From Macrostomum lignano (lineage: Eukaryota): a DNA stretch of 64,000 nt. Location: assembly GCA_002269645.1 (NCBI GenBank), contig NIVC01001498.1, positions 1-64,000 on the forward strand, read 5' to 3'. Made by a program: the position numbers and the translations under genes. Under the pieces are notes generated by a model that was not told the origin of the DNA, ran no database searches, and was given only the letters and a program-made list of their open reading frames with translations. Each line of letters begins with the position of its first letter. Within the stretch, counting starts at the first letter, position 1. Of this stretch, positions 17,301 to 23,300 are shown piece after piece.

Positions 17301-20300
17301 GTAGATCTGTGATTAGATATGGTAGATCTGGGATTGGAAGTGGTAGATATGAGATTAAAAATGGTAGATGTGAGATTAGATATGGTAGATCTGTGATTAG
17401 ATATGGTAGATCTGTGATTAGAAATGGTTGGTATGAGATTAGATATGGTAGATCTGTGATTAGAAATGGTAGATCTGGAATTAGATATGGTAGATCTGAG
17501 ATTCGATATGGTAGATCTGTGATTAGATATGGTAGATCTGAGATTCGATATGGTAGATCTGAGATTCGATATGGTAGATCTGTGATTAGATATGGTAGAT
17601 CTGAGATTAGATATGGTAGATCTGAGATTAGATATGGTAGATCTGAGATTCGATATGGTAGATCTGGAACTAGTTATGGTGGATCTGAGATTCGATATGG
17701 TAGATCTGGAACTAGTTATGGTGGATCTGAGATTCGATATGGTAGATCTGGAACTAGTTATGGTGGATCTGAGATTCGATATGGTAGATCTGGATTAGAA
17801 GCGTGTAAACTTGGATCACGAACAGGAAGACTACTATTCGACGTGAAAGATTAACTTGGTAAATTCTTGAGTTCAACAATTTAAACCATGGATCATCTCT
17901 ATTCAGCCGTTAACACCTCAATCCATCAGAACAAAAGGCCACTGAGATTCTTTGCCGCGTTGTCAACGACTGCGAGAGCTGGACTGGGCAGCCCCGAGAC
18001 CCACACCAAGCTGTTGTGAGCCTGGCTAAAGAACTGAACCGCTTGTTCAAGTGTGAGTATCGATTCAATTTCTGCTTTTAATTCGCTGCTATTATGTACT
18101 TTTAGTGGAAATTAATTTTTACTTTTAAACTGTCAAATTAAAAAGATTTGGCTCGTAATTTTTTTAGTTGTATTATCTGCTTTTTTCTCCTGTCTGTCTG
18201 TCTGTCTGTCTGTCTGTCTGTCTGTTTGTCTGTCTGTCTGTTTGTCTGTCTGTCTGTCTGTCTGTCTATCTGTCTGTCTGTTTGTCTGACTGTCTGTCTG
18301 TCTGTCTGTCTGTCTGTTTGTCTGACTGTCTGTCTGTCTGTCTATCTGTTATCTGTCTGTCTGTCTGTCTGTCTGTCTGTCTGTCTGTCTATCTGTCTGT
18401 CTGTTTGTCTGACTGTCTGTCTGTCTGTCTATCTGTTATCTGTCTGTCTGTCTGTCTGTCTGTCTATCTGTCTGTCTGTTTGTCTGACTGTCTGTCTGTC
18501 TGTCTATCTGTTATCTGTCTGTCTGTCTGTCTGTCTGTCTGTCTGTCTTTCTGTCTGTCTGTCTGTCTGTCTGTCTGTCTGTCTGTCTGTCTGTCTGTCT
18601 GTCTGTCTGTCTGTCTGTCTGTCTGTCTGTCTGTCTGTCTGTCTGCAGGGCCAAGAGCCTCCCTGCACATATCCTCTCCACCTATCTATCTAAAAATCGC
18701 GCCCGCAGTGCTCGCCAGCTCCGGCGGCAGCGCGAGCTCCAAGCCGCACTGGTTGAACCGGCACCAACTTGCCGAGGTGGCCGCCTCCAAAGCTTTCCTA
18801 GAATGGCGATCATCCCTGGGCGAGCTGAAATTTGTTGATTTGACATTTCTAAAATCTGCCAACGATAAATTTGCATTCTTTCTCAATCTGAGAAACCTCA
18901 TCGCAGTGCATTTCGCCGTCGAGATTAGTCACGTGAGAATCTCGAAAAAGTAGTCTATGAGCACTGGTATGAAATCCTGTTTAATCTGTCTCTTTAATAC
19001 CTGTCTCTCCCGCAGTTGTGGACAGACCCTGTGCTGGCTGCCTGTCCTCTGCTAGCCTGCAAGTCTCATTCCCGTGAATTCACGTACTGGATTGGCAGTA
19101 TTGGGCCAATAAGCCTGACCGATATTGACGATTTTGTGCTGGGCATAGGCAAAACTAGGCACACTGATTTGAGTAAGTATTGTTAGTGCTCTGCTTTCGA
19201 CTCTTTTTTCAAATAACTTTCAATTAAAGTTTCGATTTTTACTTTGCATTTTAAACTCTAATATACACTCAAAATAAGCCTATACTCCCCACAGTGTACA
19301 CACGCTTCTGGGCAAGCCTCTAATAACCCGCCACCCCACAATGTACACACGCTTCTGGGCAAGCCTCTAATAACCCGCCACCCCACAGTGTACACACGCT
19401 TCTGGGCAAGCCTGTAATAACCCGCCACCCCACAATACACACGCTTCTGGGCAAGCCTGTAATAACCCGCCACCCCACAGTCTACACACGCTTCTGGGCA
19501 AGCCTGTAATAACCCGCCACCCCACAGTCTACACACGCTTCTGGGCAAGCCTCTAATAACCCGCCACCCCACAGTCTACACACGCTTCTGGGCAAGCCTC
19601 TAATAACCCGCCACCCCACAGTCTACACACGCTTCTGGGCAAGCCTCTAATAACCCGCCACCCCACAATACACACGCTTCTGGGCAAGCCTCTAATAACC
19701 CGCCACCCCACAGTGTACACACGTTTTAGACAGGCCTCTAATAACCCGCCACCCCACAATGTACTCACGCTCTCATGGAGCAGCGTTTAGAGACCAAACA
19801 ATGTTTTAATTAATGAAGCGTACCGGTATTTATTTATTCTGGCCTGTTTAATTAGACACTCCACATTGGTAAACATTTACGCTAGCAGATTTGTTGGCCC
19901 AGAATTAATCCGATACTGAATTCCTTCCCAATTCCCTGAGTCTGATTAGCAGCATAATAGAATCCCATGCACTGGATGCCGTCCGCCCCCATTCAATTGC
20001 CATATGTGCCCCCCCACCTCACGGTAAATCCCTTCTAGAATTTCTCAGCGGATTTCACCCAGAATTGTGCGAGTTCGTACTGGCCGAGCAGCCCGACCCG
20101 CTCGCTGTATTCGGTCTGGTTCAGTTCCAGCGAGTGTCACCTCCGTTCAAGGTGAGAAAGATTAAAGAATGCGATCGTTTTAAAACAACACCGCTCCCCT
20201 TTAATCGCTATTGCAAGGTAATATAAGAATCTCTTTTCTTTATTTCTTTGATAAAATCTGAGAAATCTGAGAAGGCTTCAGCATTGCCTAAAAATATTTT

Positions 20301-23300
20301 TTTAACATCCGTGCAAACAGATCTTGAGAAGCAACATAAAAATGGCCTTGAGAATCTCCCTTTAATGCTCTCTAGAATCACTAAATGGCCTTGAGAATCT
20401 CCCTTTAATGCTCTCTAGAATCACTAAATGGCCTTGAGAATCTCCCTTTAATGCTCTCTAGAATCACTAAATGGCCTTGAGAATCTCCCTTTAATGCTCT
20501 CCAGAATCACTAAATGGCCTTGAGAATCTCCCTTTAATGCTCTCCAGAATCACTAAATGGCCTTGAGAATCTCCCTTTAATGCTCTCCATAATCACTAAA
20601 TGGCCTTGGGAATCTCCCTTTAATGCTCTCCAGAATCACTAAATGGCCTTGAGAATCTCCCTTTAATGCTCTCCAGAATCACTAAATGGCCTTGGGAATC
20701 TCCCTTTAATGCTCTCCAGAATCACTAAATGGCCTTGAGAATCTCCCTTTAATGCTCTCCAGAATCACTAAATGGCCTTGAGAATCCCCCTTAAATGTTC
20801 TCCAGAATCACTAAACTGCCTTGAGAATCTCCCATAAATGGCCTTGAGGGTCTACTTTGAATGTCCATGAGAACCATCTATAAAATGGCCTTGGTATTTC
20901 CTTTGAATGGCCTTGACTCCATTTAATGGCTTGAGAATCTCCTTTAATAGCCTTGAGATTCATCGTTAAATGGCCTTGAGAATCTTCGTTAACTGGCTTT
21001 GAGAATTATCGTTGAATGGCCTTGTGAATCTCATTTAAATGACCTTGGTATCTCCCTTAAATAACTCTGAGAATCTCCTTGAAATGGCCTTAAGAATGTC
21101 CCTTAAATGGCTTTGAGAATCCCTGAAATGGCCTTGAAAATCTTCCTCAATTGGCCTTGGCATCTCCTTTGAATGTCCTTGAGCATCTCCATTAAATGGC
21201 CTTGAAAGTCTCCATTAAATAGCCTTGAGAATCACCATTAAATTGCCTTGAGAATCACCATTAAATGGCCTTGAGAATCTCCATTAAATGGCCTTGAGAA
21301 TCTCCATTAAATAGCCTTGAGAATCTCCGTTAAATGGCCTTGAGAATCACCATTAAATGGCCTTGAGAATCTCCAATAAATGGCCTTGAGAATCTCCATT
21401 AAATGGCCTTGAGAATCTCCGTTAAATGGCCTTGAGAATCTTCATTAAATGGCCTTGAGAATCACCATTAAATGGCCTTGAGAATCTCCATTAAATGGCC
21501 TTGAGAATCTCCATTAAATGGCCTTGAGAATCTCCGTTAAATGGCCTTGAGAATCTTCATTAAATGGCCTTGAGAAACTCTCAGATAAGCTTGAAAAGTT
21601 TCAAAAATGACCTAGACAACCTTCATAAAACAGCTTTGAAAATCTACCATCAACTAAAAAGCCACCTTTTCTACAACACTCCAGACCTACTCGGCTCATT
21701 CAATCAAAGAGGATCTGAGCAAATCCTGTCATCAATTTGTCACCGCTTTTGTCTCGTCAAGCTCCGAAGCTGTTTCTGCTGCATTCAACGACAGCGGCAC
21801 TTCAGTGGTTCTGCCTCACTGGCTGGCCTACTATGCCCCGATGCTGCAGCAGCAGAGAAGCGCAGCGGCAGGAGGAGTCAACGACGGCAACAGTGCCAAT
21901 GCAGATAATCGGCTATGGGACCCAGCTAGTGTCCTGGCTTCGTTAAAACGCCTGTGCTCGGGCCCGCAGCTTGCTCAGACTTGGGCGCATCTGGGCGGCA
22001 GTTCAGACAGTTCGACTTCTTCTTCTGCCGGCCAGCAGCAGCAGATTCGGTGCCGGCTGGCTGAGCCGGAGATAAGCGAGTTTGGAGTCTGTATTGATTA
22101 TCCAAGCGCTAATGCTGTGGGCAAACTGGTCACGCCTGCGGATCCCGGATCTACCGTTGATGGTATTGGTGCTGCTATATGTGTCCCCGTGTGGAATTCC
22201 ATTGAAAACATTGAAGTCTTCTTTATAATCTTAATATTTTAGCCTCATCCACTGTGTCACGATTCCCGATTCCTTGATCCTTGACTTTTTAGACATACTC
22301 CGTCATCTCAGTCCCAGAATCCCATTCCGTCATCTCAGTTCCAGCCAGAATCTCATTCCATTTCTATATCATCTCAGTTCCAGAATCCCATTCCCATTCC
22401 ATCATCTCAGTCCCAGAAACCCATTCCAGTCTATGATCTCAATCCCAGAATCCCATTCCGTCATCTCAGTTCCAGCCAGAATCTCTTTCCATTTCTATAT
22501 AATCTCAGTTCCAGAATCCCATTCCCATTTCATCATCTCAGTCCCAGAAACCCATTCCAGTCTATGATCTCAATCCCAGAATCCCATTCCGTCATCTCAG
22601 TCCAAGAATCCCATTCCGTTATCTCAGTCCCAGAATCCCATTCCGTCATCTCAGTCCCAGAATCTCATTCCGTTATCTCAGTCCAAGAATCCCATTCCGT
22701 TATCTCAGTCCCAGAATCTCATTCCGTAATCTCAGTTCCAGAATCCCATTCCGTCATCTCAGTCCCAGAATCTCATTCCGTAATCTCAGTTCCAGAATCC
22801 CATTCCTATTCCATCATCTCAGTCCCAGAATCCCATTCCATTCTATCATCTCAGTCCCAGAATCCCATTCCGTCATCTCAGTCTAAGAATCCCATTCCGT
22901 TATCTCAGTCCAAGAATCCCATTCCGTTATCTCAGTCCCAGAATCTCATTCCGTAATCTCAGTTCCAGAATCCCATTCCGTCATCTCAGTCCCAGAATCC
23001 CATTCCGTCATCTCAGTCCCAGAATCCCATTCCGTCATCTCAGTCCCAGAATCCCATTCCGTCATCTTAGTCCCAAAATCCCATTCCGTAATCTCAGTTC
23101 CAGAATCCCATTCCAGTCTATGATCTCAATCCCAGAATCCCATTCCGTCATCTCAGTTCCATTCAGTTCTCATTCCATTTCTATATCATCTCAGTTCCAG
23201 AATCCCATTCCCATTTCATCATCTCAGTCCCAGAAACCCATTCCAGTCTATGATCTCAGTCCCAGAATCCCATTCCGTCATCTCAGTTCCAGCCAGAATC

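Follow-up and report, generated by a model that had tools for sequence, protein, structure and literature searches.

The spastizin (ZFYVE26) gene of the flatworm Macrostomum lignano encodes a DUF547 module that is found at the same site in other invertebrates and is missing from the vertebrate proteins tested

Does the spastizin gene of a flatworm encode a domain that its human counterpart lacks, and if so, was this domain gained in the flatworm or lost elsewhere? The question is raised by a stretch of 64,000 nucleotides of Macrostomum lignano DNA (assembly GCA_002269645.1, contig NIVC01001498.1, positions 1 to 64,000, here called the window), which contains most of the gene for spastizin (ZFYVE26/SPG15) on the plus strand, extending at least from ~14000 to ~40600. 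Between two stretches that lie close together in the human protein, five exons (exons 10-14; 17930-22162, plus strand) encode additional sequence, which an earlier reading made from the DNA letters alone (called the sequence-only reading here) had attributed to a DUF547 domain inserted into spastizin. DUF547 is a large and widespread family of unknown function and, to our knowledge, has never been characterised. We consider it highly probable that M. lignano spastizin contains a complete DUF547 module of ancestral origin, which may play an accessory role in the complex that spastizin forms. Human SPG15 binds SPG11 and AP-5 in a complex on late endosomes and lysosomes (PMC3744948; bioRxiv 10.1101/2024.06.14.598999).

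The assignment of the gene to spastizin, on which the question depends, is well founded. tblastn with six named ZFYVE26 orthologues gave matches that are collinear with the window coordinates from 14037 to 34999, a FYVE zinc finger was detected with an E value of 1.3e-13 and the conserved exon behind it matches amphioxus ZFYVE26 with an E value of 2e-45. The five additional exons are all bounded by AG/GT, have compatible phases and give a spliced frame free of stop codons. Exon 10 (17930..18052) is the first exon of the module; it starts in phase 1 and encodes an N-terminal helix ahead of the Pfam core that aligns with a helix conserved among other spastizin modules ('R.P..va.eLL..m..lmK'). 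The Pfam match begins in exon 11 (18649..18932), which encodes DUF547 motif 1 and is matched at 18744-18932 by the stick-insect and Lineus ZFYVE26 proteins in tblastn; an alternative in-frame acceptor at 18709 is used by the public models P0001, P0003, P0004 and P0005. Exon 12 (19016..19172), identical in P0003, encodes motif 2 and exon 13 (20039..20151) motif 3. Exon 14 (21685..22162) encodes the end of the Pfam core, a 10-residue motif of the C-terminal extension, a low-complexity linker and the C-terminal helices and strands, and ends in phase 1. Depending on the acceptor of exon 11, the five exons sum to 1155 nucleotides encoding 384 residues (18649) or to 1095 nucleotides encoding 364 residues (18709), both multiples of three. 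The five exons of the sequence-only reading are thus retained, its size of about 410 residues being a slight overestimate, and the four motif strings quoted in it are all present in the order in which it gave them.

The cassette is flanked on both sides by spastizin exons into which it splices in frame. Upstream, exon 8 (16370..16585, plus strand) belongs to the alpha-solenoid flank, is AG/GT-bounded and phase compatible, is covered by tblastn matches of amphioxus, Glandiceps and Lineus ZFYVE26 at 16380-16661 and is present in the public models P0002 and P0003. Exon 9 (16668..16795, plus strand) completes this flank and ends in phase 1; it is the counterpart of human PPERLAALLAQENLSLSVPQVIV, and the amphioxus homologue of the flank aligns to residues 1110-1247 of human ZFYVE26. 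Downstream, exon 15 (23723..24282, plus strand) starts in phase 1, is the counterpart of abalone YQLTPITLDYVKTDSVLVATMVSLVC and of YALTASTLEFLISQSKLTAVIACL in a vertebrate-type orthologue, and is joined to exon 14 as in P0002 and P0003. With phase-1 introns on either border and a length that is a multiple of three, the cassette is symmetric, so that its skipping or deletion as a unit preserves the frame. This symmetry fits modular gain or loss, and as judged from the sequence the cassette may also be spliced alternatively in M. lignano.

All five public M. lignano models place the exons of the DUF547 module within spastizin sequence; four of them run on into downstream spastizin exons and P0001 ends inside the module. 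One of the four, P0003 (UniProt A0A1I8I822, 1545 residues, "DUF547 domain-containing protein"), represents a second genomic copy and, as a gene model made independently of ours, has the same junctions with the 18709 acceptor. Our spliced module aligns to it without gaps and with four substitutions in 364 residues. The other four models (P0001, P0002, P0004 and P0005), which derive from the locus at 12000-29650 and from paralogous copies, are fragmentary, several of them with wrong-frame stretches, and none reaches the C-terminus. One public model of the locus is labelled 'HECT domain-containing protein'; its printed sequence consists of spastizin stretches and wrong-frame readings.

Comparison of the spliced peptide with Pfam, a check that the sequence-only reading had itself proposed, confirmed that the extra exons encode DUF547 with a match beyond chance. 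The DUF547 profile (PF04784) was matched with an E value of 1.3e-10 and 41.7 bits, above the gathering score of 27, over profile positions 6-125 of 125 and residues 111-244 of the peptide. Alignment with relatives indicated that the conserved unit is larger than the Pfam core, comprising a helix before it and helices and strands after it, and that this whole unit occupies exons 10-14. Pfam scores of spastizin copies lie between 27 and 65 bits (41.7 for the flatworm) as compared to 82-184 bits for canonical members of the family.

Whether other animals carry the module at this site was determined by an exhaustive phmmer search with residues 701-1545 of P0003 against 1.84 billion representative proteins, which gave 52 matches. 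About 25 of these are proteins of 2100-3200 residues that align in one continuous stretch through the spastizin flank and DUF547. Matches named ZFYVE26, spastizin or Sptz come from Branchiostoma, the crinoid Antedon, the stick insect Bacillus, the abalone Haliotis, the mantis shrimp Oratosquilla, the wasp Prorops, the scorpion Centruroides, the shrimp Penaeus, the octopod Argonauta and a cricket, and further matches from a scallop, an annelid, a damselfly and a freshwater snail are 'uncharacterized' or unnamed. Pfam placed DUF547 at the homologous position in all ten orthologues tested (26.7-63.5 bits). Precomputed Pfam architectures obtained with an amphioxus ZFYVE26 search combine TPR_ZFYVE26 (PF25569), FYVE (PF01363) and DUF547 (PF04784) in amphioxus, two hemichordates, two sea stars, the nemertean Lineus, Nematostella, the octocoral Dendronephthya, several molluscs and the centipede Strigamia; plant relatives in the same search have PF25569 only. 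Altogether, DUF547 is found at the same site of ZFYVE26 in cnidarians, a nemertean, molluscs, an annelid, arthropods, echinoderms, hemichordates and amphioxus, which shows that animal spastizins other than those of vertebrates normally carry the module. In word-indexed protein searches the spliced insert alone matched a single fragmentary M. lignano model, and a 1388-residue composite gave no matches beyond M. lignano models and two FYVE proteins that are unrelated, because the flatworm protein has too few exact words in common with its orthologues. The M. lignano proteins returned are identical or almost identical to the spliced peptide.

The invertebrate and cephalochordate proteins (B. belcheri XP_019625924.1, Nematostella vectensis ZFYVE26-like, Haliotis rufescens XP_046355808.2 and insect 'Sptz') have their parts in the same order as the flatworm protein, namely solenoid, DUF547, solenoid, FYVE and solenoid, and carry the module between the same two flanking helices. 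None of them retains the tyrosine of the NxYN motif, which the flatworm protein has lost as well. The flatworm copy differs from them in being far more divergent, in lacking a variable loop and 'WY..DF', and in that its TPR_ZFYVE26 region is not in the window. With free-standing and other multidomain DUF547 proteins (PF04784) the flatworm module shares the landmark residues and the N- and C-terminal extensions around the core; those canonical proteins, however, keep the tyrosine (or tryptophan) of NxYN. The flatworm domain also differs in being part of a coat scaffold of 2500-3200 residues.

In vertebrates the site is occupied differently. Pairwise alignment of amphioxus ZFYVE26 with the vertebrate-type protein P0085 matched residues 1204-1429 and 1755-2094 of the former to residues 1100-1315 and 1342-1651 of the latter, leaving 326 residues in amphioxus (1429-1755) versus 27 in P0085 (1315-1342). 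The amphioxus DUF547 module had no match in four vertebrate-type proteins (three from teleosts and P0085), in agreement with a Pfam scan of P0085. FYVE is present in all four of these proteins, PF25569 in all but one and PF04784 in none. For the human protein, a phmmer search with P0003 against PDB sequences did not have human ZFYVE26 among its matches, and the human correspondence of the module flanks was traced via the amphioxus and abalone sequences. Both orthologues align to residues 1110-1247 of human ZFYVE26 (PDB 8yad chain C), spanning VPPERLAALLAQENLSLSVPQVIVSCCC, and the abalone sequence downstream of the module aligns to the human protein again from residue 1395. The 'CCP' motif and the landmark that aligns next are 507 residues apart in abalone and ~164 in human, which leaves ~390 versus ~50 residues at the site itself. 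The human spacing of about 65 residues given in the sequence-only reading is close to this value. Human ZFYVE26 contains no sequence matching the amphioxus DUF547 domain, again as that reading had it, and in a search of PDB with a profile of 17 spastizin modules it was not matched even at an E value of 10. The module lies in the alpha-solenoid between helices that match human residues ~1247 and ~1300. Human and vertebrate-type ZFYVE26 are built on the orthologous scaffold of FYVE finger and alpha-solenoid, with module flanks that are recognisable via intermediate sequences, but have no DUF547 and lack ~300 residues at the site. The cryo-electron microscopy description of human SPG15 likewise comprises solenoid, FYVE and solenoid only (bioRxiv 10.1101/2024.06.14.598999).

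These data show a clean deletion of ~300 residues at the site in vertebrates (human and the four proteins tested) and reverse the polarity that the word 'inserted' had implied. Since the module occupies the same site from Cnidaria to Cephalochordata, the domain is ancestral and was retained by the flatworm, and it is the human protein that is derived, by deletion. Across the taxa sampled, which are cnidarians, protostomes, echinoderms, hemichordates, amphioxus and vertebrates, the distribution is most simply read as a single ancient fusion, no later than the cnidarian-bilaterian ancestor, with a subsequent deletion on the way to vertebrates.

The residues retained by the flatworm module were evaluated in an alignment of 17 spastizin modules and seven canonical DUF547 domains. 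The family landmarks N..N....H, Y.IG..G..S, F......SPP and LP..L are kept, as are the clade-invariant positions L86, F98, N101, G146, F193, P250 and L253. In motif 1, F(F/W).N.YN....H, the flatworm keeps the phenylalanine, both asparagines and the histidine, and the tyrosine is changed to arginine. None of the 17 spastizin modules keeps this tyrosine, their residue at the position being F, M, L, T, I, A, Q, E or R, and each of the seven canonical domains has Y or W there. The two asparagines and the histidine are kept across the spastizin clade, flatworm included. In motif 3, (D/E)PR..F.L......SSPP., the flatworm keeps D, P, F, S and PP and has leucine in place of arginine; the residue preceding the phenylalanine is H, S or T among canonical members. 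The degenerate motifs pointed out in the sequence-only reading are therefore real as substitutions but not specific to this species, as the loss of the NxYN tyrosine and of the 'HF' histidine is common to the whole spastizin clade and the histidine varies in canonical domains as well. The long variable loop that follows the N..N....H helix in other spastizin modules is missing from the flatworm. A thiol or redox role for the 'C..SSPP' stretch was considered and rejected, the cysteine being conserved neither in the spastizin clade nor in the flatworm.

Structures of the flatworm and amphioxus modules were predicted with AlphaFold2 from the same 17-row alignment. The mean confidence (predicted local distance difference test, pLDDT) and the predicted template modelling score (pTM) were 71 and 0.73 for the flatworm module and 86 and 0.88 for the amphioxus module. 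Helices and strands follow each other in the same order in the two models, which were compared by this order. The models indicate that the module would form a compact, self-contained globular alpha/beta domain rather than further solenoid. Foldseek against PDB returned chance-level matches only, with a best E value of 1.3 and template modelling (TM) scores of at most 0.23 for the flatworm model and a best E value of 0.89 and TM scores of at most 0.36 for the amphioxus model. PDB was also searched by sequence and by profile, the queries being a canonical DUF547 protein and the profile of the module, and again gave no match; the DUF547 fold seems to have no solved representative that is detectable by sequence or Foldseek. 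The combination of AlphaFold and Foldseek, likewise suggested in the sequence-only reading, thus gave a confident fold for amphioxus and no relative in PDB.

What might the module do in spastizin? It is situated ~600-900 residues ahead of the FYVE finger, between two solenoid helices. We propose that it would stand out from the SPG11-SPG15 arch, close to the membrane, as an accessory module for binding or regulation, and would act beside the FYVE finger during recruitment of the AP-5/SPG11/SPG15 coat to late endosomes and lysosomes. This membrane-proximal role is put forward with low confidence, and we attribute no catalytic activity to the module; we infer the role because DUF547 is joined to membrane-acting domains elsewhere. 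DUF547 is fused to PTEN in Entamoeba (bioRxiv 10.1101/2021.11.29.470399) and to glutaredoxin and DEP in plants (PMC13621322), and a plant protein composed of Lzipper-MIP1 and DUF547, which has no transmembrane helices, is found at a polar plasma-membrane domain (bioRxiv 10.64898/2026.08.17.745151). Among the proteins scanned here with Pfam, P0015 has two DUF547 domains behind a RasGAP domain and P0012 contains two DUF547 domains. Both have the N-terminal 'R.P..va.eLL' helix in common with the spastizin module. That DUF547 is an ancestral, functional membrane- or ligand-binding module of the animal AP-5/SPG11/SPG15 coat which vertebrates alone have discarded is a tentative proposal, to which we give somewhat less than even weight. 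If true, invertebrate spastizin would provide the first defined cellular setting, tubulation of late endosomes and lysosomes, in which the function of DUF547 could be worked out.

Several observations weigh against a complete, inherited and working module, and three other explanations were considered together with them. The proposed function would amount to guilt by association, and as Foldseek found no related solved structure, the predicted fold assigns no function. The C-terminal ~400 residues of spastizin with TPR_ZFYVE26 (PF25569) were not found in the window by motif and profile searches, which gave one weak candidate only (40407-40607); as the window from beyond ~40607 to its end is satellite DNA, the 3' exons probably lie outside it, beyond the satellite. 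The inclusion of exons 10-14 in mature M. lignano mRNA is predicted from gene models and conservation, and the length and phases of the cassette would allow these exons to be skipped. Exons 10-14 might accordingly lie outside spastizin, as a separate nested gene or as unexpressed pseudo-exons in a long intron: they are found among long minisatellite-filled introns, the frame survives their skipping, and the public models of the locus are fragmentary and mutually discordant. We regard this as extremely improbable, given that the cassette contains no start or stop codon, that every phase fits the neighbouring spastizin exons, that the five public models without exception place the module exons in spastizin, with P0003 equal to the spliced module without gaps, and that the arrangement as a single protein is encoded in orthologues of at least eight phyla. 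A further point concerns ancestry. When the domain was searched on its own, the best scores were those of free-standing DUF547 proteins (42.4 bits for P0038 and 39.1 bits for P0047 from Ginkgo) as compared to 38.5 and 37.4 bits for the best spastizins. Such scores do not discriminate inheritance from independent gain, so that the orthology of the flatworm domain rests on gene position and not on sequence clustering. Exon shuffling into the same loop could have given Macrostomum a DUF547 domain of independent origin, and the phase-1 flanking introns and the multiple-of-three length are what a shuffled module would be expected to have; the long variable loop, moreover, is missing from the flatworm just as it is from free-standing proteins. 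This scenario is nevertheless very improbable. Every other invertebrate orthologue examined carries the domain between the same two conserved flanks, the alignment in the exhaustive search is continuous across flank and domain, the NxYN tyrosine is replaced as across the spastizin clade and unlike in free-standing proteins, and the differences in domain-only score are small and accounted for by loop gaps.

Inherited or not, the module could be a relic that is spliced in as a mere linker, without whatever DUF547 does elsewhere. Judged by sequence it is the most divergent copy seen, being 17-22% identical to other spastizin modules, which are themselves 29-39% identical to the amphioxus module. 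It has lost the arginine of 'PR' and the long loop, and of the C-terminal extension LP..L.WY..DF, which lies outside the Pfam core, it keeps only L, P, L and Y, the tryptophan and 'DF' being gone. From the same alignment, its model reached a pLDDT of 71 as compared to 86 for amphioxus, and the M. lignano protein as a whole evolves fast, P0003 having no human match. Against decay stand the intact frame over 1095-1155 nucleotides, a Pfam score well above threshold with full-length coverage of the profile, the retained clade-invariant landmarks and the second genomic copy in P0003, which differs at 4 of 364 residues and has no insertions or deletions. The remainder of the protein is as divergent as the module, so that the divergence is not module-specific. 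A relic is therefore unlikely, if less so than a nested gene or an independent gain, and we retain the reading of an inherited and complete DUF547 module in flatworm spastizin.

Whether this architecture was already catalogued could not be checked from the sequence alone. It is: UniProt lists "DUF547 domain-containing protein" entries for M. lignano and Branchiostoma, and the combination of PF25569, PF01363 and PF04784 is precomputed. DUF547 in spastizin is thus real and already part of automatic annotation, and is not a new fusion. No paper linking DUF547 with spastizin was found in the searchable library among the papers containing DUF547 and the top-ranked papers on spastizin, and the architecture is apparently undiscussed in the literature searched. 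Its implications concern first of all the human protein of SPG15 hereditary spastic paraplegia, which is a reduced form without a globular domain of ~300 residues kept by almost all other animals tested. This bears on the interchangeable use of Drosophila, zebrafish and other models. The constant presence of DUF547 in a well-studied lysosomal coat scaffold also provides a concrete and testable context for this family.

The remaining spastizin exons in the window, all on the plus strand, continue the gene downstream of the module. Exon 16 (24711..25229) is spastizin sequence present in P0002 and P0003. Exon 17 (27190..27675) matches residues 1584-1698 of human ZFYVE26 (PDB 8yad chain C) with an E value of 0.0023 and has tblastn support, as does exon 18 (29099..29624), which encodes the FYVE zinc finger (PF01363, 51.3 bits versus a cut-off of 27.8). 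The conserved solenoid behind it is encoded by exon 19 (34425..34999), which is 40% identical over 193 residues to positions 2463-2647 of amphioxus ZFYVE26. Exon 20 (40407..40607) is a weak candidate that matches the profile positions directly after exon 19 with an E value of 0.025.

Two further genes were identified in the window. Upstream of spastizin, an open reading frame at 4171-6198 on the plus strand contains a WW domain (PF00397, E value 2.7e-12) and looks like a Salvador/SAV1-type gene; a coiled segment after the WW domain resembles SARAH by eye, and Pfam gave no match for SARAH there. A gene for a rhodopsin-family G-protein-coupled receptor (7tm_1, E value 1.6e-17; two open reading frames) is located on the minus strand at 37820-39417 and apparently lies within the intron that separates spastizin exon 19 from candidate exon 20. 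The window is also rich in repeats. Most spastizin introns carry their own distinct tandem array (4705-45958), with periods of 4 to 58 base pairs and lengths of up to 1.4 kb, and such arrays fill most of introns 9, 10, 12, 13, 14 and 17. Examples in introns or between genes are found at 16824-17800, 18190-18645, 19287-19771, 20340-21580, 22299-23675 and 27690-28927. An array with a 22-base-pair period and 133 copies occupies 41628-44575, and a 28-base-pair satellite (GACAGTGGCAGGCAGACACATTCACCGA; ~643 copies, 94% match) with a strong AT skew takes up the last part of the window, from 46748 to 64000, with a length of more than 17 kb.

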